Of a stretch of DNA of 64,000 bases, positions 1-43,885 are shown one piece after another; the first letter of the stretch is position 1, and each line of letters opens with the position of its first letter. The position numbers and the translations under genes are program-made. Below the pieces are notes generated by a model. The model was given only the letters and a program-made list of their open reading frames with translations. It had not been told where the DNA came from and did no database searches. The DNA lies in assembly GCA_000320545.1 (NCBI GenBank), contig ADNK01000693.1:9242-73241 (forward strand), written 5' to 3'. This DNA comes from Bigelowiella natans CCMP2755 (taxonomy: Eukaryota; Protista; Cercozoa).

Positions 1-3000
1 CCGTAGCATTTTGAGCAGTTTGGCAATGAGAAGCTCTCCCCCTTCTCCTCCATCCACTGGCAGATTCCACCCCCCCCAAGCCCACGTGATGGCGAGAAAC
101 TTGGCCCTGTTGGCTGCCTCCGGGTCGGATGTTGCTGACTGGAGGTGTAAAATAGCTGGTAGCAGCGGCAGCAGCAGCTCTCCAAAGAACACGGTTTGAG
201 AGAAGAGAGAGCACGGGATCATCCACTGAATGGCGACGTTGGCCATGGAGACCGTTTTCTTATTATCCTCCTCCCCCCCCACCCCTGCTGCTGCTCCTCC
301 TCCTCCTTCTGCTGTGGAGGGGGAGGCAGAGGAAGCTGTTGGGTTGCGGGTTGCGAGCTCCTTCAGGCCATCTGCAAGGGAGGCGACAAGCGCAGTGAGG
401 CCGGTGCTGCCATGCTGCCTTTTATGCGCGACGAAGCTTGCACGCGTCACGGAGACTAGAATGTTACCGACCTCTTTACGTACCAGCTTGTAGGGGTGGG
501 AGAGGAAGTCGCCCTCTCTTAGACGGCTCACCACCCAACCTCCCACATCGCCCACGCGGAAGGAGCATTCATCCAGCATAGCGCGCAACAGCCGGAGGTG
601 CCGGTAGATCTCGGCACTGCTCGATGACGCCTTGGACGATTGATCCCCCTCTCCAACCGCTGCTTCTAGGCTTCTCTTGAAGGGTTGGTGTGCGAGTTGG
701 GCTATCACAGAAGCGAGCGCACGCGGTGTCTCTCGTGTGGCACGCATTGAACAAGCGACGGCATCTTTCCACATGTCGACCGTGTCCTGGTTTCCATCCT
801 TTAGCTAAAAGAAGAGGTGTGTGTAGGGGGGGGGGGGGGGGGGGGGGTCGGTTGGAGGAGGAGTTAGCAACATGATGGCCTCAGTACATTTATTATCATT
901 ATTAGGACTATTATTATAATAACTGCTAATATCATTATCATTACAGTAAAAGCAACAGCAGCAGCAGCTGCAACAACGGCAGGGCTGACACGAATAAGTA
1001 TGCATAAGGTCCTCTTCTCTCTCTCCTCTTCCTCCTCGCTGTCGCTATTACCACTTGCTGTATAGCCGGATTGACAAACCGTGCAAGCACATCGCTCTGG
1101 AGGCTGAAAGACCCCGTCACCAGGTACTGACACATAGCTGCCACGATCTCGGCAGCAAAGCACTGTTTTTCCTTCTCGTCGCTCTTCACTAGCTGCAACA
1201 GCCGCTTCCCCGCATCCGCCACGTAGTCGGTACCCCCAACGACAAACAGGTGCGAGAGAAGACTCACGTGCGACGTGTCGAACGCACTACCATATATCTG
1301 AGGCGTACGGGGAGGAAGTAGCATTGCAATGGCAGAAACAACAACAACAACAACATCAAACAGGGAGAGTAGAACAAAGATACACTACTACAGCAGTCTC
1401 AACATTTCTTCGGCAAGTAATAACTTCGTCAACAACTACTACAGCAGTCTCAACATTTCTTCGGCAAGTAATAACTTCGTCAACAACTACTACAGCAGTC
1501 TCAACATTTCTTCGGCAAGTAATAACTTCGTCAACAACTACTACTTTGAAATATGTTTACTTACCCCGTCAGCCGCTCTAGCAAACTCATGCAGATACCC
1601 AGTGCGCGACCTAAAGACGTTGAAGATGTCCAGAGCAGCCCCCTGCTTCTTCTGATTGGCGGCGTTTGGAGAAAGTCTTGGGTGGTTTTCCTCCAGGCTC
1701 TGAAAGAGGCTCTTCGCGTCGCTTTTCTCTTCTTTATCAAAGACCACAAACGCCTTCAAAACCTTAAAGGACGCCTCCCCGAGCTCCAGGCTTTTGATCT
1801 TGGATTTCTCTAGGAGATGCGATGAAGAGGGAGGCTGGTGAAGGCGGTCGCCGAATTGACGATAAGTCCTGGCATTCCATTCCTTCTCGCCTTTGTAGCC
1901 CTGCATGCTCAGTGTCGATGACGACGATGACGACTCCTTCGTCTCCCCTCCCTCTTGCTTGCTGTCGGTTGGCTCGAATGTGAGCGCTTCATGCGTAGCG
2001 ACCGTGGCCAGTAGCGCAGCAAGGCCTCTGATACACAGCTGCCGCATGGCGAATAAATCACTGACGCATCCTCCGGTGATGAGCGCCATTGCGGCGGGGG
2101 AGGCGATGGCGGGTGCGAGCGATTTCGGTGTAGTAAGCAACAGCTGTATCAGCAGCGACATGGCGACGAGTCGGTATCGCCAGTGTGTCACCGTCCCCCC
2201 CCCCCCCCCCTCCCCACTACCTCCTCCCAAGCCGCTCACAAGCTTATCAACGATTGACTTGACGCGCTTCTGCTCCTCCTCCTTCCACACAGGGAGACAG
2301 AATTTGGAGAGGAGGGCCATGAACACGGCGTGCGTAGCTGCCTGAACCTGCTCCTCCTCGTGGGATTCGCAAACACCGGAGAAGATGTGCGTGACGACGA
2401 GGAGGATGCTGTCAAGGCTGCAAGTAGCCGCCTCTAGCACCTGTGGGAATGAAAGAACTTTCAGAGCGCCCCCGAGCTGCTCCTTACTCGCCGTCTTCCT
2501 CTCTATAACCTGCTGCAGCAGATGTCCCAGGATGAAGCTGCATGCTTCGGGGTACCGCCCAAGCGCAGTGTTGAGACCGTCGTTGGCGGCCTTCCGCACT
2601 TTCTTGAAGTCATTGAGGGATAGTTTTAACAGAGAGCTGGTGATGGCCGTGTGTGCTGCCGTGCTGTATCGCCGGTTGTTCTCTAGGGAGGCCTCGTGGC
2701 GAAGAAGCTCCATGTAGTGAGCGTACTCGACGTTCAGGATTCGGATTTTACAAACCTTCTTCTTCTTCTTGCCCTCCCACTCGTCTCTTCGCGAGCGCCT
2801 CGACTGCATATTCGAGTGGATCTCTCTGAGGAGTTTAGACCGGTTTATCAGCCATAGGTTCACGCACAAACTCAGACTCTCCGCGAGCTTCTCCATCACC
2901 TTTGCGTTTTCTAGCTTGCTATCCCCACCCCCTCCCGAGCCGGAGTCGATGTTCATCATTGTCGCTCCTTCCCCCTCCTTCGTAACCCGCCTTCGCTTGT

Positions 3001-6000
3001 TGCTAGGAGATTCGTCCGAGGAAGCAGCAGCAGCAGCACTCGCCTCCTCCCCATCCGTGCTCAGAACCCCGGCGTTGGTGTCCTCGGCGAGAGCATTGAG
3101 CTTGCTGGTGATCACGGTGCGCAGGGAGCTGTTTCCCTTGGGGAGGAGGGAAAAGTGTTCCCCGCAGCCGACCTTGCAGAAACCGATGGATAGGGATGAT
3201 GATGACGATGACGACGACGACGCACTACTAGTGTGCAGCATGTAGTAGCACTGGTTATGAGGATGGTTGGATCCCGCGGAGAGTTGAGGCCTTTCAGCTG
3301 CTTCGAATTCCATTCCATCGATCGTTGGCTTCTGCTGCTGTTGCTGCAGGGCGTCCGTAAACTCTCCCAGCACGCTGTTCGCGCCTCGCTGGACGCACAT
3401 GACTTGGCACAGCGCGTTGCACATATCATCGGCGCTCACGCTGCTGTTGTCAGGACCTTGCTCCTTTTCTTTTTCTTCTCCCGAGTCCTTGTTCAGGTAG
3501 CGCTCGATGACGTTAAAAGCTGGGCCAAGGGCGAATTCGCACAGATCTGCGGCGATTTTCATGTCGTCGTCGTTGGCGACGTGCCACTTAATTTTGAGGT
3601 CATTGATGTCCTCGCTGTAGCCGCCCCACTCCTGCCAGTGCTTCCATTGACTCTGCTGCCATTTGTCGGGGTCTTGCCCCTTGTACTCGACAGGGTACCG
3701 GCGCGTGAGAGCTCTCAGCACGTTTCGCATGATACGCTGTGAAAAATCGCGGCAGCTGCCGCTGGATGACCCCTTGAAGACATAGAAAATGGCTTTGATC
3801 TTGGTGACGATGTCCTGCTGCTGTTGTGGTTGCAGCTGCGTGATAGGGGCTTGCTTCATCAGCTGCGACATGAGATAGAGGCAGTGCTGTTTTGCTGCTC
3901 CCGGTGTGTCCTCGCGTTCCATATATACCTTGCCGCCTTCGATGTAGGAGCATTTCTTTTTCTTCTTCTTCTTCTGCCCATCCTCTTTGTTCTCCTCAGC
4001 ACTCTCCTGCTGCTGTTTCGAATCACCGCTGCCTGATGCTGTGACAACGATGATTTTGTCGGTGAGTAGGTTGAGGAAGAAGAGCAGCCCCTTCTTGTCG
4101 CTAGGGCTAGATGTCAGTCCGATGGCATGCAGCACACTGCCGAGGTACTTGGAGTTCGGCCAGAAGTCAGCGTCCATGATGCGCTTTGCTACATGGATAT
4201 TGCACAGCTCGCGAAGAGAGGCCGAGAGGGAGGAGTAGAAGGCCCTCACACAGCGGTGGATGAGGGGAAGGGCCATCTTATCCACAGGGTTCTTGTTCGA
4301 ATACCCTTCTTGCTCTCGGATCAACAGCAAGATGCGGTCCAGAAACTGCGGAGCCCATTCCTTCAAGCACATTGTTGCGCGTTGAGCTTCCTCGTCGTGA
4401 GATGGAGGAGGAGCAGCAGCAGCAGCAGATCCTTCGCCCCCCTCCCCCTTTCCCTTCTTCGATTTGACCGCCTTGTACTCCCTGGCATCGATGAGCGGCA
4501 CCGTGTAGAAGAGAAGGGTGTAGAGCATGAGCGTTTTCCCAGTCTTCATAAGGTCTACTGGATCAATTCCTGGCAGCGCCAGCCACAAGATGTCCTCTAA
4601 TCGTGTGCAGCCAGAGGGGTTGATCCTCCTGTTCACAAACGTGTCGCCAAGCCAGCCCAAACAGCTCAGGGCGCTCATCGTGCGATGGCTTTGCGTAGCG
4701 TTTTTCAACGAAGGGATCCTACGCAAGAAGAAGACAACAGCAAAATTGTCGTATGAGATATTATTGCAATAAGTAAATTAACGGTCTCGCTGTATAGTAT
4801 TTATCTAATGGTAGGACTTACATGTGCGGACAGGATATGCTATCTATAACGCACATTAGTCGGAATATTATAGTGGCAGCAGTAGTAGGAAATAGTGGGG
4901 GCAGAAGGAGCAGCGCCCAATGCGACGCACCATTGATCGATGAGGGAAGGGAGCACGGAATCTGGGTTCACACTGCCAACATTCCTAAGGAAGCTCTGCG
5001 TGGCAGCCACCATTTGGAAGGCCTTGGAGTACATGCCCATCGTAGCAATGGGAAGAAGTGTGGCGACGAAGAACTTGCTGATCTGCTCCGGGTAGGGCTT
5101 GCCCTGAAGGAAGAGCTGCTTCCGTCGCGCATAGTAGCAGCCAAGGCCAGAGAGCAAAACGGAAAGGTGTCTCAAGTGAGCACCTGCATTGGAGGGATGA
5201 AATGACGTGCTCGTGATTTGACACAAATTCGATAAGAGCTGCCGGCACTTATCAAGGTGGATGGTGAAGATGATCAGCTTGGCCATGTGCTCGTCCACGT
5301 TTGCACGAGCGGGGTGCATCCCTGTGAGCCACATGAAACGAGCAGGAAACCCGTGCTCCGACCCCTTGTTTGGATTGCCGCGACCAAGGCCAATTCCCTG
5401 CAAATATCGGGAGAACAGGTCTGGTAGGTAGGGGGAGAGGTCAACAACATCAATGTTGTGCTTTGCCAAACGAGCCCATAGCTTGTACCACACAGCCATC
5501 GACACTTTGTCGCTCTTCCAGCGGGATACTTCCATCAACTTCGGCAACCACATCTCGACATTGTTCTTTCCATGTTTTACAGGCAAGAGAAGACATAGAA
5601 GGGCCTGGTGCTTGCTGAACTCGTCAGTGAATGGCTCCAACTTGGGGAGGAAGAGCTCTGTGATTTCCTTCGTGGCGGTTTTCGGGTAGTACATCCGCAG
5701 CTTCTTTCCCAGCTGTACCAAACGGTCGCAGCATATTTTCAGTGTTTGCTGAGGCGAGTTGAAGACACGGTTAGGCTTCCCCTTTCTCGGATCATCGACG
5801 TAGCGAAGAAGAGTTTCGTAGAACGGTTTCCAAGGGAGAGTAAGTCCTGTTACATCCTTCTTCTTAAGGATTTTTGTCAGGCAATACGCCGCTAAAGCCA
5901 TACATTCGGTATGCTGAGTTGCCCATTTAGCGGTGATAAAGCCGTAAAGGATACGTGCCAGCTGTCTCTTTTGGTCGAAAGGGATAGGGTATTTCAAGAT

Positions 6001-6549
6001 GAGGTAGTCTTTGAGGAGGTCTAGGTAGTAATTAACCCCTCTTGAATGCCGGTAGTCTCTGCCGCAAATATCACGCTTCTCGATGACTTTGGGAAGCAAT
6101 CTGATCATATTGTTTGCAGAGCAATGAAAAGAATGTTGGTCAGCGCATTACTTCGTAGCAGTGTGGAGATCCCATGAAACACAGATTCTCCCAGTCGATT
6201 TGCTCGCACGCACGCGTATTTGAAATGACAAATACTGAGCTATAATACTGAGCTATAATACTGACCTTAAAACAGTTGAAAGCATGGACTGTGCGTGAGC
6301 AGTAAGAACAGGGGCAGAGCCAGGAGCGACATTCCGATTAACAGTCAACGAAATGGCACTCCCGTCATCCTTGGATTCTTGAATATGGGGTTATTGAGGA
6401 AGTTAAATGGGCGCGCGCAATGCCAGGCTAGCTCGCTATGCTGGCGCTGTGAGGCTGGGGTGGAGCTCAACTATTCAGCTCAGATTAGGAAAGGAAGGAG
6501 AAGGGGTGTGTGGAAACAAAAAGCACTGACCGTTGGATTTCTGTGACAT
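1..6549 (-). CDS. PSME4: Proteasome activator PA200/Blm10 (PSME4 family), multi-exon, 3' end outside the window
   Basis: Exons at about 6549-6531 (MSQKSN), 6378-6266, 6100-4931, 4718-1565, 1297-1055 and 804-1 join through GT-AG introns. Family-like motifs: LTLPWKPFYETL, FHPSNAG, LALPGID, WHVANDDDMKIA, HWRYRLVA, HPYKLVRKEVG. Long helical HEAT-like protein. Confidence 0.88.
1384..1545. repeat. 51-bp minisatellite, about 3.1 identical copies, in a PA200 intron
   Basis: Unit actactacagcagtctcaacatttcttcggcaagtaataacttcgtcaaca starts at 1384, 1435 and 1486, with a partial copy at 1537. Confidence 0.95.
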
Positions 6550-23779: not shown

Positions 23780-24536
23780 AACATGTTTGAATAACCAAGT
23801 TCATAATGATACTTTGTTCCATATTATGCAAATTAAAGAAAAAATAATTGCCTGTTTAAAAAAAAATGTATCTTTGTACGTGTACACGCGTGAGCACATG
23901 TGCAATTTGCTATTTGAAGAAAAACTAATGCTAATCACTGTTTCACTCTGGCAATGGCAGTGGTTACTGTGTTTCGGTTGGTCTGTTAGATTTACAAGCC
24001 AGATTAAAATTGTATCAAATTAAAGTATCAGAGTGTTCCAATGACGCGTAGCCCTTATTATTGCACACATAATGCGCAGTCAATCAGTGGCTGCGCACAA
24101 ACGATTTGCTGGTGCGACAATTACTTTAAACGCATACCATGTGCTTTATTAACAAGGAGTATCGATTCCAAGATGTATTTTCACAACTGCTGTTTTTGCA
24201 TGTATATGTACGTAGTATTGATTACGTATCCGAATCAACATACAGGTGTGCACTGTTGCTTATATGGCTACGGTTGATGTTAGTATCTTAGATATTGTGC
24301 GCAGCACTCTTGTTATTCGTCTTACAGCTGAAACCGTCGCTTGGTGTGACATAGGCCCAGGCACATATTTGAGCATCCATGTACTCGCAAAAGTAAATCA
24401 AGCACAACGCACAACCCATGATCATTCCTTGCAATAAAAAGCATAGCTCTACTATCATAATCATAACCACCCTCTAATGATTTTTTATGTACATTGCTTC
24501 ACCATCACATACATTATTTCATCAAGGATCATCCTC

Positions 24537-25054
24537 TTAACTACTACAGTAATCATCTATCGATGTTCGACTCTAATGCTACTTCCTGATCTTACAGCTC
24601 GAAACCTAACACAATAATAGTGAAATAAACAAGTTGAAAATCATACGAGAAGGGCAAATAAGCTATGTGGCTCTAGTTTTATTCTCAATGTGTAAATGCA
24701 AAATAAGCTCAAAATCCATTTCTTTTTTAGTTGTTATCGAATATCGATACGTTTTTACCTCTCCCCTTTTGTATCATTTGACAGCAAATCCAACACGGGA
24801 GGGGAGCGTTGGTATCCTATGAACACTGTATGCACTGCGACACCTACCGAGTTGAGACGATAAACACTAATTACAGTAATAACTACATGATGAGGAAACA
24901 TAATGCTTTGTTTCTGGCTGATTCGAATCATACTTGTTAGTAGTCTTATTATTACCAATTGATAGTAATACCTAATGCATGAGCTAATTGACGCTCCACA
25001 GTGACACGACAGTCGCCTGGTGTTTGTTGTTGTTAGATTTGAACAATACATGCA

Positions 25055-25091
<37 letters not shown>

Positions 25092-25924
25092 ATTTCATCA
25101 TCATCGTCGTCGTCGTCCAATATAAATAATCAAAGGATCATAAATAAGCTAACAAAACAACATTAGTTGCTGCTACTACCACATATAGGGGTAGAGTTGT
25201 TGTTGTAAGGTTTGTGTTTTTGTTATTGTTATTGTAGTTGTTGTTACCACATATGTACCTTGATTAGGCAGACCATCAGTGAGAAAAAGGATGTGTCTAT
25301 TGGGTTTTTTGCTGCTGCCACTATTGATCGATGAGGATGATAATGACGACGACGACGATGATGATGATGATGAAGTAGAGGAGTACATCCTGGATCGAGG
25401 ATTCTTCGTTATCAACCCCAACACACACACAGCAAACGTAAAACAATCAGAACGATACACAGCAGCAGCAGCAGTATTGTGATGAAAGAAGGAGAAACAA
25501 CTTTACACATTATATCATCACACAAATCAACAGCAGAAAAATTGTTGTCGTTGCTGTTGTTGTTGTTGTTGTTGTTGCAGTCGTTCTCACTTTTTGAGGG
25601 GTAAGATTTTCAAACTCCATGAGAGCATCCTTAAGAGGATCTTGGTAGTTGGTATAACCATCACAGTGAAGTGCAGCTGCAAGCTCGCATACCTTATTGT
25701 GCCGATGATAATTTAAATATTATGATGAATAAGAGGATGATGATGATGATGATGGCATTTATGAATCTTCTTTACTAACATCTATCACACAGCAATTAAT
25801 ATAATTACCATCATTATCATCAAACGGTCACTGTATTGGTATAAGTCAACGGTGCATCGTATGAATTGTCAAGATCATATACAACAACAACATATTGAGA
25901 GATCACAATCATGATAACATACAA

Positions 25925-26006
<82 letters not shown>

Positions 26007-27284
26007 CACTGTGGCACTACCACCACTGCTACGTGAGTACCTTATCATGATCTCTTGAAAAGAATTGTCCCTTTGGAGTGTACTTTTTACTTTGATGATT
26101 GAACTCGATATAGCTGAGGATGCATAGGACATTAGATCACTATAAGTACCACTTGTTTGTCATGTTAAGCATAGAGGAGGGAGGGAGGGGAGGGAGGGAG
26201 GGAGGGTGTATACGAGGATGAGGGGCATCAGCTAGCCACGCCGATTATAATCATCATGTATATTCCAGAAGAGAATGATGGAGGGGAGGAGGGGGAAGAT
26301 GCATTGTTTATTATGAAGAAGTCTTCAAGGAAGCAACACGTAGTACTATGTATGGCTGCCTCTTTCGGTAGGTTCTTCTTACTATGATTCATATCTACAC
26401 GTGATCATCATACTCTTGATTATCATCATCTGACTACCCTACTCGCATCCAATTCTTCTTAGCAATGTGGATCAACCGTTGTATTACCTGAAGGAGGAAC
26501 AATAAACTCAGTGGGTAATAATAATAACAATAGTAACAATAATAATAACAATAATAATAATAGCTACACTATACTCTATCTGCTACAGCTACTATCGCTG
26601 CTGCTTCTGCCTCCTTTTGTTGCTGCTTGTTGTTGATAATGATATAATACTCTTTCTTTCGGTAAGAATGCCGACTACTAATAAGCATTCCCAATCATAA
26701 ATCATAGCGTATTATTGACAGACCCTCTATTATGACTGACCGGATATGTTCTTTTCCTTAAAGAATCATTCATTAATTCGTTGAATAATGTGTTGTTATT
26801 TACTACCTCAGATGCCCACTGCGCTTTGATTCCATTCATTGAACCAGAAATGTCACGTAAAATAGCTAACTCACCACTTGTTTTCTCAGACGCTCTTTCA
26901 TCAGCAGCAAGCAGCCCCGTGTAATGAATGGAGGGAGGAGGAGGAGGAGGAGGAGACAGCACCATATACACATATAAACAAATATAATACACACACATAT
27001 TAATATATGATACATTAAGGATGCATTTCCTATCATATTTCTGTTGTCCGCCCCCCCCCCCCAGCCCCTCGCTCTCTCACCTTCCTGTTATGACTGTGTT
27101 GTTTTGTCCCATAAACAAATATGGTGTGCTGCTACTGCTGCTACTACTTCTATCAAGTATCACTACCTCTCCATTGATCGTGGTAGTGTTGGCATTGGAT
27201 TTGCGACCCAATTGGCCATTTCTGCAGGTTCGCTATCTTCCATATCACCTTTTATGTACGTAAGTGACAACCACCGAAAGGCAG

Positions 27285-27319
<35 letters not shown>

Positions 27320-29537
27320 ATTATATGATGATATATATTAATATCTAAACTGTAGGACAGAGAGAAAGAGCAACTTCTAGCTGATTATAGCATAATAATT
27401 AGATTACTTATAAAGATGTTATCATTCTCATTTGTACTCTCATTGCATATTGTGAAATCGCTGACTACAAATATAACAATATCTATTGTTCTTTATATAT
27501 CATATCAGTAAAAGCAGCTAGAGTTAGAGTTATCACCAAAGCTCCTCGAGGGTTTCCATTTTCGAGGGACCCCACTAGATGAAGGACCGCCAGTCACCTT
27601 TGCGCGCTGTAAATTGATTAATTTATCAATACTTATTTGTTCGCAACTCATAGAATGATGATAGAAGCAGGTTTTTACATCAGGAAAAACACTTTGTAGT
27701 ATATGTTTTGTCGCCGCATCATCATCATCATCATCATCATCATCATTATTTTCCCACGATGATTGTTAATCAATGTACTCAAAGAGAGTATCTGTACTTT
27801 GAATAAGGCCTTGCCCCTGTTCTTCTTATTCTTTGTTATCATTATTGTTATTTATGTTACAAACTGTCCGTTGGTTTGTCTATGGTTGTTGTTGTCTCAT
27901 TGTTGCCAATGATTAAGATGTGTTTGCTGAACCAACCTGCATTCTCCCTGAAAGTGCATTGAGCAATAAATCCATGTTTTCTATTTGCGAGGAAGAAGAC
28001 TCATACTGTTCCTCCAAGCTCTGATGGTGATGGTGGTGGTGTGATGATGATGATTATGATTATGATGATGTTTACTATTATAATGCTAACGACACACACA
28101 CACACACACACCACATACACATGGAAAACACATGGACCTTCGTTGCTGTATAGGGGTTAGGCCACTGCCTGATGTGCCCGTTTTCCTTATCATCATCTAT
28201 GTTATAATGTGAAAAAGAGAGAGAGAACGAGGGGGGGAGGGAGGGAATTAGCGTGAAACAGCAAGCGCTGTACATAATCTAATTGTCATAATGAATGAAG
28301 TGCGTGATGACAATGATTGGTAGGTGGTGAGCAATCATCATGATCAATACTGTTGACCATTGCTGCTGTCTGTCGGTCGTTCATCACGATGTGTGAGTGA
28401 ATCATCCAAATTTCATCATCATCATCATCATTTGCTGTCTATTCTCCTGCTATTTACAACTACTGGGATTGCTACTATTGCTGGTACTACTACTACTTTT
28501 ACTACTACTACTACCCTTTTCTTTGTCTGCTGCTGTTGTTGTTTCCTCATCGTCCAAGGGGTTATTAGCATCGGTCCCCTCTTTCTCATCACCATCATTC
28601 TTGCCGCTATTCATCGAGTCATTCTGGTGTGCAATTTTATTTGAGGGGAGGATTGTTTGTATAACATCATTTAGTCGTTCAAAGAGGGAGCAAACAAGAC
28701 AATGAGCTAATACAATTGTTATTTATCGTCATCTTCATCGAGTTGTATCACCATCTTGTAGTCTTGCTGTGTCTTATTGAGAATGAAATCGATCATCTTT
28801 TGAAGAGACCTAGTTTGACGATATGGTTCAAGTGGAATGTGTGTGTTATCGTACTACTATCTAGATGACGACGATGATGATGATGATGATGATGATGAGG
28901 ATACTCACACCAATTAAACGAATGTTAGCTAGAAATCATATAAGATCTCACAAGTTGGTTTTACCAACAGGAGGCTAATCGTAATGTTTGTGTTGCGTTT
29001 AAGTAACACCTGCTGCCCGTTTGCTGCTGCTGTTCCTGTTCCTGATTTGCTCCTTCCTTGTTATGCTTCTAAATGACAGTGGAAAAAGGGAGAATCAAGA
29101 CATCAACCATACACATGTTATGTAAACATTTAGCTGGTAGCTTTAGCTAAATGATAAGAAGTGCGAAACACACTGGTTCAATAGGAAGAACAATGTGCAC
29201 ACAACCCCCGCCATCACCAGCATTACTATAAACAGCAGCAGCAGCAGCAGTAGTCCTAAGAACAATTAACTCATCAACTAACCGACTGACTAACCAACCT
29301 CGAGAATATCGAAGTCTATCGTCAATCTAGGTGCCGCAGAAGAAGATGAAGAAGATGATGATAATGACGAATCCTGTGGAAATTAAGGTAAAAACATATG
29401 TATCTAATAAGATACGACTGCGGAATGAAGATGAATATAATTATATGTGTATAGATATATTGGCAGGTAATAAATAATTCTCTATTACGTTAGGAGGATG
29501 AGATGTCATATATCATAAAGGCCCTCTCTTTCTCTCG

Positions 29538-29582
<45 letters not shown>

Positions 29583-29973
29583 CTAAGGTGGCAAGGAAGC
29601 TAGAAGAGAGATCAGGACGAGTGATGAATATCTTTAACACAACACTATACAGCTCGTTTGTAAAACATGCAGCGGTTGGGAGAAAACCATGCACGCAAGT
29701 AGAGAAATCGTTAGTTTTTTGAAATGACTGAGTATACTGCTCCTGCTACTACCACACATGGTTGCTTGTTTGTTTTCTAAATCTTTCACACACTACTGTA
29801 ATCTTCTATATTCTGAGAGTACATGTGGTGCATAGGAAGAAGATGAGGAGACAGAGCTAGAAGATGAACGTTCTGCAATAACATATGAGATGGTGGGTAG
29901 GGAGAGAGTAGCAAGGGCGTGAGGAAGGGGATTAAATAGATAATGAAGAGGACGATGATGATGATGCTGCGGG

Positions 29974-30011
<38 letters not shown>

Positions 30012-30718
30012 GATCAACCTCCATTACTTCCTCCTGCTCCTGGCTCTTCACCCTGTACTCCTCCTCCTTCTCCTCTACTATCATTTTTCATCGTTGTGTT
30101 GTTGTCGCTAGAGGAAGCAGGAGGCGAAGAGGGGGATCCTTGATTGTTGTTACCATTGTTGTTGTTATGAGGATTGCCATCCTCCTCTCCCCCCTCCTTT
30201 CCATCAGTACCCTCATTCCCTGCTGCTGCTGATGATAATGATAATTAAAAAAAATGGGGCGATAACAGTGACAGCCGTCAATCGGAGGAAGAAGCAAACA
30301 GCACCAAAGAACAATGAATGGAATGGTCCTCTTTTCGAAAAAAAGCCAAACGACGGGACAATAACCTATCTCATTTAGGTCAAAGCAGTCTAACAGCATT
30401 AGCATATCAGCATTACCATCACCTGCATTTTCTCCTTCTTTCTTCTTTTTCTTCTCTTCCTCCTCTGTCTTCATATTGTTATTGCCCTCTTGTTCAATTT
30501 TTTTTTCTTCTTCTTCCTCCTCCTCCTCGTCCTCCTCACGGTCCTTAAGAGTCTCCAGGAGCGCATTTATCAGTAATGGAACCTTGGGGGCATTGCATAG
30601 TTATTATTGTGGTGGTGGTGGTAGTAGTAAAACCGTATCAATGCTTTCAGATTAAATACTGTGCCAAACTTGCCTTTACTCCTTGCTCTCATTCCACCAC
30701 TATCACCAACATCTTCAC

Positions 30719-30750
<32 letters not shown>

Positions 30751-30996
30751 CACCATGAAAAGGTAGGGTATGAAGTATATAGTAGTACCTCCTTGTGGAC
30801 TTCTGGAGGCACTCTATACGTTGTAATCAGTGACAATACCTAGCAGCACCGATCAATGAGAACAAGTAAAAGAATAAGAAGAAGAAGAAGAAGATTATAT
30901 GTCTCTCCCTTTCCCCTTTCCCTCTTCCAGTAAAGAATCAAACAGTTTTGCTTGTAATTCATTTTCTTCCTCATTTTCTTTACTAGTTTTCTTCTT

Positions 30997-31027
<31 letters not shown>

Positions 31028-31575
31028 ATCTGCTACTATTCTAACCTTGAGATCCTCCGGAGTTACGTGCATCCTCCCGTTAAGCAATGCATGGGCCTTT
31101 AGCACCTGATTACATAATCACAAGATGATAATTATGATCACAAGATGATGCTCATGATGGCAATCATCACGATGATGCGATGAGAACGAAAATACTAGGT
31201 GTAGGGGATATACACAACAATATAAGCTTTCTCTTCCTCTAGAGATTGAAAATAGATGTGTTGATAAAGTAGTTATGATTAAGGCAAAGGCGTGATTAGC
31301 ATAGCCGTAGAAGAATCCTATCTACTAGTAGTACTAGATGTGTTATCATTGTCGTTATTACTACACCGCCACCTTAACGGTTTTGACAAGCATAGTGCGG
31401 TCGGAGAGTATGTGGTTATGATCCTGCACCTTTTATCATTACAATGATCATCAATCATCATAAGTCAGGGATAGAGAAAATATAAAAATACGACGATGAT
31501 GTGACATTACCATTGTGAATGATTCATCATCCAACATGTCACTGATTGCAAGTACACTTAGCCGTAGTAGTAGTC

Positions 31576-31609
<34 letters not shown>

Positions 31610-32799
31610 AAATAGTAGTCATGAGTCCTCCTCCTATTCCTATTCTCCCTCCCTTCAGCACTCTGAGCTGGTGACAATATCATAAAATGCTGCTACCACC
31701 ACTACTACTACTGCTAGTGCTAATGCTGCTACCACTAGTAATACTCCTAATACTACTTCTACTACTACTCTATCGTCATTTTCCAGTGCTTGTATGAATG
31801 ATAGGAGTAACCGCTTCACTTTAATGGGAACCTTAGTACATCATGATTATCAGGATTAAAGTCGTTATCATTGCTCTCACTCTCCGCCTCTTCCTCCTTC
31901 TCCTCCTCCTCCTCCTCCTCCTCCTCCTCCTCCTCATCATCATCATCACTATCATTAAGATGGCAAATAAGAAAAAGGTAACAATAGTGGGCTGTAGTGG
32001 TATTTGTAATATTCGTAGTATAGTTGTAGTAGTACATGAACGTAAGATGCAAGCTTTTGAGAATCTCTCAAGAGATCTAAATTCATTTGCTGCTGCTGTT
32101 GCTGCTGCCTATACACGACGTTGGATCGGTGAAAGAGAGAATGAGAGAGTAGTACCAAGGTCAGTCGTCATCATTTGCTCACAAAACAGTTTTTGTACGT
32201 ACGTCTGTTTGTACCTCGATTTCTTCCACAACATCATACTACTACTACTACTACTACTTGATAGACTTATTGTGGCTATAATTGGTATTCATGCATGTTC
32301 TTACATTTTTCTATCATCATAATCCTTCTCTTCCACTTCTTCTTCATTCAGCTTGTCATTCTCTTTTAGAAATCCAGAACTTGTCGTAGTTGTCAAATCC
32401 CCAAAGTCGTCCATGAGCTGGTATCAGTCAATGACATTATTATTATTATTAATAATAATAATAGATAGGGACAACAATCAAGTTGCATTGTGATCGATTC
32501 CTCTCAAAGGATGATGTCGTCGTACGTGGGCATGTTGTTTGCATCATCATCATTCGTCATGTTCATCGTTGAAAATATTGTCAATACCTGCAACGCATCT
32601 TCCCAATTGTGATCCTGAATTAAGCTCTTCGATTCCACCTATTCATCAGTTTATTGTCAATACTCTATAAGGAGTCAATCAATAATCAGTCATGCCGAAG
32701 AGAGAGATTACATGGATATAAATCATATCTCCTTTTATCATCTTCCACTTCAATCGTCAGCAAGTCATCTCATCGTATAGCACGAGAAGTTATATAGTG

Positions 32800-32832
<33 letters not shown>

Positions 32833-33955
32833 ATAGTAGTAATGGTAGCAAAGGTAGCACTTACTTGCAGCACAAACCGATCTAAATTGGCAGGGTCTAG
32901 GGGTTCGTTGTAATATGATTCGTCGCTCGATGGATTTCCTACAACAATTAGTGAGTGACTGAGTGACTGATTAATTTGAGAAGGAAGAGGAAGAAAAAGA
33001 TGACCAGGCAAGTAAGTGGATAAATCATTAATTCCTCTTCTTCTTCTTCTTCTTATTATTATTATCATTATTATTTACTACAACCCTGCTACCTGTCGCA
33101 ATAGCGGTCAGAAGAGGAATGCTTTCTCCCTGAAACTTACGTTCATTCAATAACCTAAGGAGGATATTCAATGCCTCGCCTTTAACAACAACAATTTAGA
33201 AGAAGAACATCATCAGATAATTGAAGATATAAAGTGTTGTTGCAATCAATTGTACTACTACTAATACTACAACTAGTACTCGGTGAAGGAAGGAAAATGT
33301 TGTTTTGTGCTTCTTCTTCTTTCTTATCACCAGGAGCACGACTGATATCGTCCAGAACGCACATGTCACAAGTCAAAATTCCACCGCGATTATTCATCTA
33401 ACGTATTGGTGTCAGACATTTATTAGTGCATAGAAGGAGTAACATCAAATATTGACGACTTAGAGTAAGTATAGCAGCTATTGAGTATCAATACATTATC
33501 TAACAAATACTAGTTGTAGCAATACTATTGAAGTAGCAACCTGCTTGATTATTTCTCCTCCAGTCTCATCGTGTGTTGATTTGACCAAAACCTTGCGATA
33601 GATAGTATACAACAAGATTCTTTATTACTCCTCGAAATCACGTTACATATTATTCACAACACTCAAAAAGATTATTATTTTGTTGATCCACTTAGAAATA
33701 GACTACTACTACCGTGTCGCCAATTAGCTCAGAAAGACGTGTATCTCTATGGAATTGATAGAAAAAAAAATCGCCTCCAAACAACGCAGCCGTCGTCTCT
33801 GAAATTGTGAAAAATATGATCATAAGCATAAAATCCAACTCTTTCGTTCGTTTAACAAATGCACTGTGTTTTGCCTCCTCTTCTCTCTCGCTCATCAATA
33901 ACTGCCACTCCTCCTTGCGACGAGTAACAGGCTAGGAGACATGGAGGCGGAGACA

Positions 33956-33991
<36 letters not shown>

Positions 33992-35300
33992 CACGGAAAA
34001 ACATATCCGACAAAATTAACTTTTTTTCGTAAGCTACCTGCAAGCATTGTTTTGCCTGTTCCCGGAGGTCCTTCAACGTAGACATGCTCTCTCGCTAGCA
34101 ATGCGAGTAACACCGCTTCCTTCACGACAGAATGCCCAACCACGCATTTGTTTAATGATTTCTATGTGAATAACATGTACGAACGCCTTAGATTGCGCAC
34201 AAACTACTCTATTTGCCAATCTTCATTAATCCGATTGACGACAAGAAGAAAGACAGAAAGGGACATTGTGCGGCTACCCAAGGAGAACGAAAATAACAAT
34301 CAAAGGCAAAGTCTCATTTGCTAATCTCATTAAATCATAATCACAATTCTTGATCTTTACCGTATAGTCGTTACGATAATGAACAACAATCACATTTGGA
34401 ACCTCCTCGAGTTTCTTACATATTTCTTTTGATTGATTGACACCTTAACTTCTTTCAGCCCAGCGAATATTTCTTTCTCCTTTGACTTAAGCTTAAGAGT
34501 GAGTGTTGGCCGTTTCTGATTTTGTCTCCTGATGAGGAGGATGGATTTGTTGTAAAACATTCCAGATAAGTCAGCTGAACATGACAGACTAATCTCCGAA
34601 GAAGGGCCTCGCTCTCTCCCTATTTCCCCAAAATCAAATATTTTAATTTCGAATAATGAAGCAGCGTAGTTCAATGACACTAATGCTGCATATTGTCTAA
34701 CTAACTACAACATCTCATCATCATCATATTCTCATTGTGTCATCACCATCATCATCATACATGTTGCTGCCCAATGAATGTGAGTAACCAACTGTCAACG
34801 TAGTGCAATATCGTAGTACCTCTTCGAGTGATTTCTGATCAGTATTAAATGTGGTGATGGTGATGGCACTCGGGAATAGCGCCGCAACCCTGAATTTGTT
34901 GCATGTATATTTAGCAAGCCAAGTTGAAACACTGCACCAAATGATGAACAACAACACTACTCACATGGCAACCGATGAACAGCCAGCATTATCCTTCTCC
35001 TATTACGCAATAAACAAACACAAATGCAATAATGGCCGAGGTACAAGAAGAACAATAGATGTTTACTGCAAAACATCCGCATATTGAGTCGTGTGGTGGA
35101 GTATATTAGTCGCTGGGACATTATGTGGTAAATAAACGATTCGGATGATGACACCAAAGTTTCCCCCCTCAAAACCTAATCTCCACAAAGCATGAACATG
35201 TCACCTTTAAAGCACTTGATATGATCGATGCAACAGACGAATCAGAGTTGCTGCCCTCCTATCGTTATTCCGAAGCAGAGCAGTAGAAGCAAAACAGTTA
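24537..35300 (-). CDS. MoxR/RavA-type AAA+ ATPase fused to a C-terminal VWA (MIDAS) domain; many exons, both ends approximate
   Basis: AAA part: VVGHSVVKEAVLLALLAREHVYVEGPPGTGKT (about 34160-34045), QFHRDTRLSELIG, CVLDDISRAPG|EALNILLRLLNER, IATGNP...EPLDPANLDRF, LSDRTMLVK, KAHALLNGRMHVTPEDL. VWA part: ILRDISGSMNG (about 26860-26835), DGYTNYQDPL, ILFLTDGLPN, VAVHTVFIG. Confidence 0.8.
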
Positions 35301-35599
35301 TGTGTTGGATGGATGGACTCGGCAGCAGGGTGGTAGATAGGTAGCTACCACTTACTTACTAGCTGGTGTTTTGGTCAGTGTTGTCTGTCTGGTGCTCTCA
35401 ATATCTCCTCCTCCTCCTCCTCCTCTGATGACGATGATGATGATCAGGGCACGTCGACGTATGTACGAGATGTCTCGGAGATGACGGTATTATTAATGGT
35501 TATTGATGAATGAAGAAACGCCCTACATTTTCTAATAAATATAACATATTTTTGGCATTATGACTAATATTTCGGTTGTTGCTACTGCACGTGTAGATC

Positions 35600-39994: not shown

Positions 39995-41487
39995 ATTGTT
40001 GCCGGCCACAGCTCCTCAGCAATGGCGATCATTTTTTTCATCTGAGCAGATACCTTCCCCTCCTCAATTTTCAGTCCCTCGGAAACATTATGACCCCATG
40101 CCAAAGCAATATTGGCCCAATGCTGTTCTATGCCGATTGCAAATTGGAACTCTCTTTCTCTTCGTCTTCTCCATCGGCACTTTTTCACAGAAGCCAGGTC
40201 TAAATTTCCCCCACCGTCATTCACGCCTCCCTGATTGAATGTGTTGCAGCTCGAAGGAGATATGTTCTGAGCTGTACCCGATTCGAGATATTGAAGAAAT
40301 ATGATACAGATGGTCCACCTAAGGGGACGCCAGCAGCATTTGAAGCAGTATTGTTCCCGAAGGAAAGCAACTTAAACGAGATTAAAAACCATACCCGAAA
40401 CAATTTTTCTCTCCTTCAGAAATGCATGAAAACACGCATCCGTGGTGGCTCAAGTATCTGTCAAAGTTTCCAATCTAGACAAAGCCTTAATATCAGCAAA
40501 TTTGCTGCAAAAAAGGAACTCCATCGGTGTGAAGAAGAGATAAGGAGATTACGTTCGCTTGGCGTGCAGCCAACTACAAAGGCGTTCTCCGATACAATTG
40601 TTGCATTCATAGAAGATGGCCGTACATCTCGGGCTGAACATTGGTACAGTGAAATGTCTATGGAAGGCTTAGATCTCCCTGTGAGTGTCTTTGCTCACAT
40701 CCTTGAAATTTTAGCAAAAAATCCAACAAAAGATCTTGAAGCTACTGAAAGGTGGGTGTACCGAACAGTGAGGAGGAATTACAGCTTCGAACCTGGCATT
40801 TTAGTATCTTTGAGCAATGCACGAATGAAATTAGGAAGCTTTCGTCAAGCTGAGACTTTTCTATCAATGGCCATTGATCGCAACAGCAACGTCACTGCAA
40901 AGCATATCAACGATCTTGTTATCTCTTGTGCTAGGGGTGGCAGTTTCGCAAGAGTGGAAAAATGGAGGAATAAATTACGAGAAGAATATATGACGGATCT
41001 TAAACCAATGTCTTTTCTAATAATCATCTGGGCTGCTGCCGAAAAGGAGGTGAAAGAAGACAAAATAATGGCATGGATGCGGATTCTCTTCGAAACATAC
41101 AGTAACCACCCAGATCTTGATAGCGAGCAAGGCCGTGAAACCATCCAAATTGTCGCGAAAAGACTAGGGGATATAGGGAAATGGCAAGAAGCCCGAACAC
41201 TTCTGTACAACGCGGTAGAGGCTGGGATAACTCCAAATGCTGATGCTTGTAGCTATGTTGTCAGGGCTCTTGTGGATGCTGAGGAAATTGACCTGGCGGA
41301 TGAACTCCTCGAAAGAATGATTGAAGCTAGGATGCTTCCAAATACAATTGCGTTCACCTCATATATCAATCACTGTGTACGAAGCAATTCCACTCAAAAA
41401 GCGGAGCATTGGTTGCAGCGTTGTGGTGCTATGAACGCGAAATGGGCAGAAATCTTTCGACGGGTCCCGACGGAGCACTTAGGATAA
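39963..41487 (+). CDS. Pentatricopeptide-repeat (PPR) protein with a predicted N-terminal targeting leader; one intron at about 40198-40249
   Basis: PPR motifs GVQPTTKAFSDTIVAF, GITPNADACSYVVRAL, RMLPNTIAFTSYINHC. The upstream ORF at 39963 splices in frame (CCAG|gt...ttgcag|CTCGA) to the 40291-41487 ORF. An ATG near 40098 is an alternative start. Confidence 0.8.
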
Positions 41488-42630: not shown

Positions 42631-43885
42631 TCACAGCATGCCTTCTGTCTCTAAAGATTGTGGAATCTGAGCCGTTCCTACATTCATAAACTCATGACGC
42701 AGCGATGCCAAATGTTGTGAGCGTTGAAATTGTCGTAACCTACGGGTGACCTCCAGATGCTCTCCCAGGAGGGAAAGAGGTCGGCCGTGAGCATTTGCCA
42801 TATGATTTTCATATGTTTTCTGGCATGATTTCAGGTCCAAATTCTGATAAGCCATCAAAAATGCGGTGGGTGGGGCAATTGAGAAAAGATCACCGATCTC
42901 ATTCCCACCAAATACCAGAACCGACTCATCTTTATGAATGGCTTCGTGTATGAATCTAGCAGCACTCACAATCTCGGAGGCGAATGCGTCACCTGTTTGG
43001 TTGAGATTTAACTCCAAGATACTGATGCCCCTGGCTTCTAATTCAAGCCTTGCCGGGGTGGGTATTGTAGCATTAGCGGTATTAATAATGTGAGTGATCC
43101 CTAGCTGAGAAATTTTCTCTGGGTCGCTCACTTGACGTAGGTTTCCAAGCCAGACCTTTCCACTACTTTCGTCAGTAGAAGTAGAGGTGGTTGGGGTAAG
43201 TGGTAATGGTACAAGGTTTGAGTCTCTGGATCCCCTGCCATTGATTTTGTTATATGGTCTCGAAAAGGACTCACGTAAATTTTGAAGAGCAAGCATACGA
43301 ATATTCGGCTTTGGCAAAGACGATGACTTAATGCGTGGTTGTTCGAAATTTTGTATATCCCTAAGAGCTGCTGCTGCATCCTGTTCATGCCATGATTTCA
43401 ATGTTCTTTTCTGCTTCTTAAAGAAGCAATTATATTTTCTTTCTTGCTCAATGATCCAGTCTTTCAGACAATCAGGCCTCTTATCGTGTTTGAAAACAGA
43501 TTTGCCACACCTTAAACATGGGTAGAGCTTATGTCCCCAAATGAACTCTTTCTTTCCCTTTTTATCCTTTCGCACGACAGGGGGTCTTAGTGCGTAATTG
43601 TCGCAAGCCTTAGGCTCTTGCCAAATCATTCTGCCTTGCATAATCCTTACTCCATAGCAGGTAGCTGCCATGGCACCCACCACACCTCCCCATATGTTGA
43701 AATATTCAAGTCTCATTTCATTGTGGTACGGTTCCCACTCGCGTATCCAAGGTGGAAGAAGCGCTATTGCGGTTATTACAAGGGGAATGTATCCCATGAT
43801 GATATCACTTAATAGGATGAAAGGGGTAGTAGTAGGCTCTCTATGAAAGAACCCCTCTTTGGTCCGCCATTCGAAAACTACTATC
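42631..43885 (-). CDS. Dual-specificity phosphatase-like protein lacking the HCX5R motif, with N-terminal hydrophobic segments
   Basis: DSP-fold motifs VWLGN, LGITHIINTA, AARFIHEA, ESVLVF, AFLM. The active-site position reads VLVFGGNEIG. The frame stays open upstream of ATG 43797 to about 43885. Confidence 0.7.

Follow-up and report, generated by a model that had tools for sequence, protein, structure and literature searches.

A 37-exon gene on the minus strand

We analyzed a 64,000-nucleotide stretch of the genome of the chlorarachniophyte alga Bigelowiella natans CCMP2755 (contig ADNK01000693.1 of assembly GCA_000320545.1, positions 9,242 to 73,241 of the forward strand), which we refer to as the window and in whose coordinates all positions are given. 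Its minus strand carries a gene that joins a MoxR-class AAA+ ATPase module, through an acidic linker, to what we identify as a C-terminal VWA domain. An earlier note, made from the sequence alone, had placed at 24537–35300 a run of minus-strand exons encoding a MoxR/RavA-like AAA module with its lid and, beyond an acidic linker, a VWA domain bearing the metal-ion-dependent adhesion site (MIDAS) residues DISGS, T and TDG. All of these elements were located, and the position was about right, the true coding sequence running from 34989 to 24557.

The structure of the gene was established by a transcript. In a spliced alignment, the transcript contig L017 (3,031 nt, intronless, JGI sample 3300017095) mapped to the minus strand of the window from 35446 to 24467 in 37 exons, with mismatches at 2 of its 3,031 nucleotides, and all 36 intervening introns (75–449 nt) had GT..AG borders. 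The only long open reading frame (ORF) of this cDNA (nt 152–2941) encodes a protein of 929 aa, P0159, whose ATG lies at 34989 and whose stop codon ends at 24557 (exons 3–37), with in-frame stops in the 5′ untranslated region (UTR) immediately before the ATG. Because L017 aligns across the locus with splicing and holds this one 929-aa ORF with upstream stops, both the AAA+ and the VWA domain come from one mRNA. The earlier note had seen no intergenic gap between the two domains, had taken the locus for a single intron-rich eukaryotic gene and had proposed one ORF on cDNA as the check; the transcript bears it out on each point. A genome-wide search of the 91-Mb assembly with P0159 placed all significant matches at this one locus, and the gene is single-copy and nuclear. 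A candidate paralogue on another contig (C2910) was rejected as ClpB. The transcript evidence makes this compact, single-module MoxR-VWA protein the product of a genuine nuclear gene in an alga.

Raw translation of the 24–36 kb part of the minus strand yields many short open pieces amid low-complexity, microsatellite-rich DNA; read consecutively with GT..AG sites, the pieces spell a MoxR-like AAA+ core, then an acidic stretch and then a VWA domain. Exon-by-exon searches of protein families and of the PDB were nearly uninformative because single exons encode just 17–70 residues: a Pfam scan of the stop-free pieces taken singly gave a borderline bpMoxR/Mg_chelatase match for the Walker A exon and none for any other exon, and the Walker A exon by itself found generic P-loop matches among PDB sequences. 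Used as a query against 1.84 billion protein representatives, the same exon had as its top match a 908-aa protein with 80% identity across the exon, followed by ~20 further matches of 650–935 aa in which AAA_5/bpMoxR and AAA_lid_8 precede a C-terminal VWA. P0151, a Norrisiella sphaerica MMETSP transcript product of 988 aa, belongs to the same 90% cluster as the top match; it is collinear with the window from 34161 to 24560 and spans both domains.

A word search with P0151 recovered P0159 together with P0160 (jgi/Bigna1/130919, a public Augustus model of 917 aa), both fitting the window exons at about 95–100%. P0160 skips the Walker A exon (34161–34038) and the DISGS exon (26894–26807), and its precomputed Pfam list contains AAA_lid_8 alone. 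Unlike P0160, the transcript-derived P0159 matches the genome exactly; judged by these sequences, the public model at this locus appears to be wrong and to need correcting. The features of the gene and of P0159 are as follows.

24467–35446, minus strand: whole transcription unit, 37 exons and 36 introns (spliced alignment of L017)
24557–34989, minus strand: coding sequence, exons 3–37, 929 aa, P0159 (ORF of L017 through the exon table)
35446–35360 and 35258–35205, minus strand: 5′ UTR exons 1 and 2 (exon table of L017)
34444–34989, minus strand: basic leader, exons 3–5, residues 1–60 (composition; low model confidence for residues 1–33)
34038–34161, minus strand: N-terminal helix and Walker A GPPGTGKT, exon 6, residues 61–102 (motif)
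33331–33397, minus strand: Walker B LDDISRAPG, exon 9, residues 148–170 (motif)
32588–33179, minus strand: post-Walker B helix, sensor-1 ATGNP, Arg finger LDPANLDRF and end of the core, exons 10–12, residues 170–240
32865–32938, minus strand: sensor-1/Arg-finger exon (motifs ATGNP and LDPANLDRF)
30789–32417, minus strand: low-complexity insert followed by the AAA_lid_8 lid, exons 13–18, residues 241–379
31373–31429, minus strand: lid exon with the SDR sensor-2 (motif)
28138–30582, minus strand: long helix, then acidic Ser/Asn/Gly-rich linker, exons 19–26, residues 380–639 (composition and model confidence)
27167–28020, minus strand: conserved, family-specific pre-VWA segment, exons 27–29, residues about 640–718 (family alignment)
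24557–26894, minus strand: VWA domain, exons 30–37, residues 718–929 (motifs and predicted fold)
26807–26894, minus strand: MIDAS DISGS, exon 30
25591–25692, minus strand: MIDAS GYT, exon 33
25259–25403, minus strand: MIDAS TDG and an inserted poly-Ser loop, exon 34
P0159 residues 61–240: AAA+ alpha/beta core
P0159 residues 241–287: low-complexity insert
P0159 residues 288–379: RavA-type lid, including the SDR sensor-2 and the TTYRVPPEVH motif of the family
P0159 residues 380–427: long helix
P0159 residues about 430–649: acidic disordered linker

Microsatellites of the (GT)n/(CA)n and (GA)n types and trinucleotide runs crowd the introns and some exon edges (33950–34010, 25880–25990, 27290–27330 and 29980–30020), and several coding exons contain homopolymeric Ser, Glu, Gln or Asn tracts.

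The AAA+ module, the linker and the VWA domain

P0159 exceeds the Pfam cut-offs for bpMoxR (69.7 bits; cut-off 27), AAA_5 (67.0; 22) and AAA_3 (44.9; 27), in one stretch each, and for AAA_lid_8, the RavA-type lid (32.3; 22.8). The AAA_5/bpMoxR stretch (residues 56–239) and the AAA_lid_8 match are each the only ones in the chain. An AlphaFold model built from a 62-sequence family alignment, which we call A2 (mean predicted local distance difference test score, pLDDT, of 72.6, with 401 residues above 90), likewise has one alpha/beta core and its lid. P0159 has a single AAA+ module of the MoxR class, its lid being of the RavA type, in agreement with the count of the earlier note.

The eukaryotic AAA-VWA proteins named in papers on MoxR (PMC3893208, PMC10743472) are midasin, VWA8 and ChlD. 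VWA8 and midasin (Rea1/Mdn1) resemble the algal protein in combining MoxR/dynein-related AAA+ modules with a VWA/MIDAS domain at the C-terminus, but VWA8 has two such modules and midasin six, and their chains measure from 1,900 to over 4,000 aa, against one module in 929 aa here. The earlier note had reckoned with a VWA8 or midasin fragment; one AAA module in a complete 929-aa ORF is what the locus encodes. We rejected the fragment on this module count and the completeness of the ORF, not on a direct comparison with the VWA8 sequence. Full-length bacterial homologues of P0159 (630–710 aa) are likewise far shorter than VWA8 and midasin.

By sequence, the closest solved relatives of P0159 are MoxR proper (MRP subfamily; Cytophaga hutchinsonii CHU_0153, PDB 2R44; 1.9e-13) and RavA (1.5e-8). 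A Foldseek search with the model agreed, ranking 2R44 first (2.2e-17, template-modeling score 0.71 by target), followed by RavA and then MCM, so that 2R44 is the best solved relative by both sequence and fold. It differs from the algal protein in that it consists of the AAA part only (331 aa), has Asp-Glu at Walker B and relies on a separately encoded VWA partner. RavA–ViaA of Escherichia coli has in common with P0159 the MoxR-class AAA+, AAA_lid_8, the SDR sensor-2 and the pairing of a motor with a VWA/MIDAS domain, but it comprises two proteins rather than one chain, and RavA too has Asp-Glu at Walker B. An identity as RavA itself was rejected: the RavA model NF010054 scored 39.7 bits against a cut-off of 681, over residues 61–206 only, and a phmmer alignment of P0159 with RavA stopped at the lid, leaving the triple-helix and LARA parts of RavA without a match. 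A ViaA/CoxE-type VWA domain was also rejected, as VWA_CoxE (PF05762) was matched by neither P0159 nor P0151, and the bacterial homologue P0217, at 17.1 bits, fell short of the cut-off (26.4).

Walker A, Walker B, sensor-1, the Arg finger, sensor-2 and the MIDAS DxSxS/T/D residues are kept across the members of both a 22-member motif alignment and the 62-member A2. Further AAA+ motifs spelled by the window exons are FFFYQFHRD, LLNERKF, SDRTML and, in the lid, ALLNGRMHVTPEDL. The acidic pair of Walker B is Asp-Asp (D163, D164) in 62 of 62 members of A2, in contrast to Asp-Glu at the same positions of 2R44 and RavA. Slow, switch-like AAA+ proteins, DnaA among them, typically carry Asp-Asp at Walker B, and the invariant pair may mean that ATP hydrolysis in this family is slow or switch-like.

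With bpMoxR as its top-scoring Pfam model, P0159 might be a component of a MoxR–vWA–beta-propeller conflict (immune) system of bacterial origin. AAA_5 scores nearly as high, however, and the gene is single-copy and conserved in a eukaryote. No PADLOC model matched, and the bacterial genes of the family lie in housekeeping neighborhoods, in which no beta-propeller or effector neighbors were found in three inspected contexts or around 80 bacterial loci. We rejected a defense-system identity on the PADLOC result and the lack of such neighbors, and consider a conflict-system role highly improbable.

C-terminal to the lid and the long helix, the linker is rich in Glu, Ser and Asn (39, 33 and 28 of 275 residues, respectively). 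Its pLDDT is below 50 over most of residues 430–649, and it is predicted to be disordered. The pre-VWA segment that follows has the motif GG.PR.W ... W ... P.LPR, with invariant A2 columns at G679, P681, W704, P713 and R718. The MIDAS of P0159 (DISGS, GYT and TDG) aligns with the invariant columns D732, S734, S736, T802 and D865. In the model, strands alternate with helices through residues 715–929, with block pLDDT mostly 82–96 and no match to a solved VWA structure; the poly-Ser loop inserted in this domain (residues 829–852) has a pLDDT below 50. Homologues reach the Pfam VWA cut-off (P0163 with 26.0 bits against 23.8, P0217 with 29.5 and P0053 with 31.9). On the basis of these homologues, the motif alignment and the predicted fold, we assign the C-terminal domain of P0159 as a VWA domain with a complete MIDAS.

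A fused family in bacteria and protists

Word searches with P0151 and an MMETSP member found bacterial fused MoxR-linker-VWA proteins of 630–710 aa that align collinearly from end to end (E values between 1e-171 and 1e-138); such fused proteins come from Tectimicrobiota/Entotheonella, SAR324, Dadabacteria, Thermodesulfobacteriota, Nitrospinota, Poribacteria and Myxococcota. The family motifs are REHxYxEGPPG, FFFYQxHRD, LDDISRAPGE, NEPLDPANLDRF, TTFRVP, GGxPRxW, ILRDxSxSM and HILFxTDG, and P0159 is homologous over its full length, with 48–50% identity to bacterial fused members in the aligned columns of A2. The bacterial proteins have the same Walker A, Asp-Asp Walker B, sensor-1, Arg finger, lid motif, pre-VWA segment and MIDAS as the algal one; what they do not have are the algal extras, namely the ~50-aa basic leader, ~260 aa of linker inserts, the poly-Ser loop in the VWA domain and the 36 introns. 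In databases they are labeled 'ATPase RavA', 'MoxR-like ATPase' or 'AAA family ATPase'. A pattern scan in which each bacterial or archaeal species was represented by a single genome turned up relatives in 237 stretches, exclusively from uncultured lineages: Entotheonellaceae/Tectimicrobiota, Nitrospinota, Poribacteria, Dadabacteria, Thermodesulfobacteriota, SAR324, Lambdaproteobacteria and Myxococcota, with a few in bins labeled Spirochaetia or Ignavibacteriales. Sequence comparison thus assigns P0159 to a distinct, unnamed MoxR-linker-VWA family that is already fused in several bacterial phyla.

MoxR ATPases have been described as a bacterial and archaeal family (PMC3893208) and their VWA partner as a separate protein (PMC10743472), and the earlier note had set out prokaryotic MoxR ATPases as acting with separately encoded VWA adaptors and had inferred that a bacterial pair became fused in a eukaryote. 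Neither point is supported as it was put. Zhang & Aravind (2012, PMC3495828) note occasional fusions of MoxR with vWA genes in prokaryotes, and because full-length collinear fused homologues are common in several bacterial phyla, the fusion, as judged from sequence, is older than the eukaryotic gene and was inherited rather than formed in the alga. The algal gene is an uncharacterized member of the family, and the fusion itself is not new.

The family can also be split between two neighboring genes, an arrangement seen in several Thermodesulfobacteriota/Dadabacteria and in one bin each of Leptospirales and Zymogenus (L072, L076, L077, L084, L099 and L101). The first gene encodes the AAA core and lid (~320 aa) and ends directly past the FRVPEE motif; the second (265–410 aa) begins at the acidic linker and has the VWA domain at its end, so that the break falls exactly at the linker. 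The gene break in Entotheonella DD2 (L054), whose relatives are fused, could reflect a frameshift. In a tree of the AAA part, split AAA proteins nested among fused ones on short branches, because of which either fusion or fission occurred repeatedly or some of the splits are frameshift errors of assembly. Such two-gene arrangements, together with the fact that characterized MoxR systems are mostly two-gene pairs (PMC3893208, PMC9976466), would be the starting point if separate bacterial motor and adaptor genes had been acquired and then fused within a eukaryotic lineage. The nearest bacterial relatives, however, are already fused and collinear with the algal protein throughout, lid-to-linker motif and pre-VWA segment included, and the split AAA proteins fall inside fused bacterial clades, fused forms thus being widespread in bacteria. 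We regard a fusion within eukaryotes as very unlikely. Close relatives in the two states provide natural split and fused variants for comparison, and the family also offers its invariant Asp-Asp Walker B.

Myxococcota have a third arrangement (L063, L068, L071 and L078), in which the AAA part of the fused gene is very divergent and a conserved AAA-only paralogue of ~320 aa comes directly after that gene, a layout resembling ChlD plus ChlI. Photosynthetic eukaryotes have in ChlD/BchD the classic protein with a single AAA module, an acidic linker and a VWA domain. The earlier note had overlooked it; we tried this identity and, on the sequence searches below, excluded it. A chelatase D-type subunit (ChlD/BchD or a cobaltochelatase relative), bridging an AAA+ partner and a catalytic subunit for metal insertion into tetrapyrroles, would share with P0159 the identical single-chain order of AAA+, acidic linker and VWA/MIDAS. 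In addition to the Myxococcota layout, the protein-language-model neighbors (Atlas) of a Hondaea homologue are ChlD-like clusters (scores 0.94–0.95, features only), and TIGR02442 gives weak matches of 22–29 bits. That score compares with a family cut-off of 779, however, and chelatases belong to another AAA+ subfamily with the lid AAA_lid_2, which in P0159 scores 19.9 bits, under its cut-off of 22.7, where AAA_lid_8 is above its own. Searched genome-wide, the BchD-ChlD model TIGR02031 found genuine ChlI on contig C1890 and ChlD exons on contig C856 and missed the MoxR-VWA locus. An H-type or CobN-type partner does not adjoin the bacterial genes, and an AAA-only paralogue was not found in the algal genome. 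We therefore rejected ChlD/BchD identity, by the TIGR02031 search and the sub-threshold AAA_lid_2, and hold a chelatase D role in the wider sense to be improbable.

The bacterial neighborhoods looked like lineage synteny rather than a client operon. In Thermodesulfobacteriota/Dadabacteria the family genes adjoin YceG, ProB, GST and GyrA, and in Tectimicrobiota a short-chain dehydrogenase lies downstream; across the three inspected contexts and in ORF clustering around the 80 loci, we found housekeeping lineage synteny only and no client gene.

Among eukaryotes, Rhizaria contribute Bigelowiella and Norrisiella. Hondaea fermentalgiana members are labeled 'ATPase ravA' and 'MoxR-like AAA family ATPase'; on BEYU01000074.1 two of them form a tandem pair of paralogues (727 and 744 aa, same strand, about 730 bp between them) flanked by genuinely eukaryotic genes (Exo84 and Cpn60/TCP1). 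The member from Durusdinium trenchii sits within a mis-fused gene model, the diplonemid Artemidia motanka and several EukProt/MMETSP entries also carry family members, and two metagenome contigs with members have eukaryotic neighbors such as kinesin fragments. By these sequences, the family spans four or more eukaryotic supergroups and already has annotations in public databases, and it is shared by several little-studied bacterial phyla and the protists of those supergroups. In the literature on MoxR in Bigelowiella, eukaryotic RavA/ViaA homologues, mitochondrial proteomes and fused MoxR-vWA, we did not find the eukaryotic single-module family described.

The identity of P0159 to bacterial proteins exceeds that to most other eukaryotic members, as it might if the locus were bacterial contamination or an assembly chimera. 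Against this stand the 36 spliceosomal GT..AG introns with a matching spliced transcript, the position of the locus inside a 64-kb eukaryotic contig and an orthologue in the transcriptome of a second chlorarachniophyte (Norrisiella); the introns and the cDNA refute contamination.

The trees were quick, unrooted searches that gave warnings for long branches and composition. In a full-length tree, the non-myxobacterial bacteria grouped together (support 91), with eukaryotes and Myxococcota opposite and the eukaryotic backbone without resolution. Constraining the eukaryotes to one clade gave a tree that was better by 1.44 log-likelihood units, and an approximately unbiased (AU) test did not reject it (p = 0.545); in the AAA-only tree, the chlorarachniophyte pair lay closer to bacteria. 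Being unrooted, the trees fit a placement of all eukaryotic sequences within or next to a fused bacterial clade without proving it.

Location, mechanism and origin

The first 40 residues of P0159 contain 10 Lys or Arg and no Asp or Glu, and in six eukaryotic lineages the protein extends 35–60 aa past the bacterial start with a basic stretch that has almost no acidic residues. Because of these basic, acid-free extensions, a mitochondrial location is suggested: the leader of P0159 resembles a mitochondrial presequence, and the protein probably works in mitochondria. The earlier note's proposal of organelle targeting is plausible in this form. Plastid targeting in chlorarachniophytes requires an endoplasmic reticulum (ER) signal peptide with a hydrophobic core, and the basic leader of P0159 has no such core.

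We propose a mechanism modeled on RavA–ViaA, NorQ–NorD and CbbQ–CbbO (PMC3893208, PMC9976466). The AAA+ modules would form a hexameric ring, as in other MoxR ATPases, and the six tethered VWA domains would grip an acidic residue of a client through the metal site of their MIDAS; ATP-driven movement of the ring could then remodel the client or aid the insertion of a cofactor, with mitochondria as the presumed site of action. In NorQ–NorD and CbbQ–CbbO, MoxR hexamers likewise act with a VWA/MIDAS adaptor that engages the client (cNOR and Rubisco, respectively; PMC9976466), but there motor and adaptor are two genes that adjoin the client genes, whereas the family described here has no linked client gene in the contexts examined. 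Taken together, we consider it likely that the locus is a single-copy, 37-exon gene for one MoxR-linker-VWA protein with an inherited fusion, which would act as a hexameric client remodeler, probably in mitochondria. Of the earlier note's overall interpretation, one gene of bacterial derivation, plausibly organellar, survives; the fusion is inherited, not made in the eukaryote, and the family is widespread and already annotated. As a natural tether of motor to adaptor, the protein should be handy for structural study of how VWA/MIDAS domains engage MoxR rings.

Several points weigh against this interpretation. The function, oligomeric state, localization and client are proposals from sequence and analogy. 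The Asp-Asp Walker B could mean that hydrolysis is weak or absent, and bacterial neighborhoods point to no client, the gene standing alone amid housekeeping genes. On P0159 itself the Pfam VWA model stays below its cut-off, VWA_3 alone matching with 20 bits against 27. Long branches and compositional heterogeneity limit the trees, so that one or several eukaryotic acquisitions are possible. The mitochondrial reading, finally, has composition as its sole basis, and the leader of the Norrisiella orthologue is atypical in being rich in Ser/Pro, not Arg.

That atypical leader, and the fact that residues 1–33 of P0159 are merely disordered in the model (pLDDT below 50), would also be expected if the same protein acted in the cytosol or in the plastid/periplastid compartment. 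The leader of P0159 nonetheless is basic and lacks the hydrophobic core that the plastid route demands, and the heterotrophs Hondaea and Artemidia have members with similar basic leaders; a site outside mitochondria seems to us rather unlikely. Supplementary proteome data searched for an experimental localization of a diplonemid orthologue made no mention of it.

A more specific history, which we offer tentatively and would not favor on present evidence, builds on the mitochondrial reading. There would have been one acquisition from a bacterium with the fused gene, and the protein would be an old mitochondrial MoxR-VWA maturation or remodeling factor, kept in scattered lineages of protists (Rhizaria, stramenopiles, dinoflagellates and diplonemids) and lost from animals, fungi and plants. 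On the same tentative footing, the nearest bacteria would be former 'deltaproteobacterial' lineages, SAR324 and Myxococcota. If this were true, the family would be a third eukaryotic MoxR-derived AAA-VWA machine beside midasin and VWA8, the latter of which is mitochondrial (PMC10743472), with a client of its own, perhaps a respiratory or metal-cofactor enzyme. The protein is also a candidate for an organellar factor that the standard model organisms lack. The practical gain will be modest until its client or location is identified.

Rfam and tRNA scans of the window gave no matches. Elsewhere, the window has further long open frames of 1,061 and 422 aa (1541–6108, minus strand), 398 aa (40291–41487) and 388 aa (42631–43797). 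The G+C content is 52–56% in the first 6 kb of the window and about 40% elsewhere.

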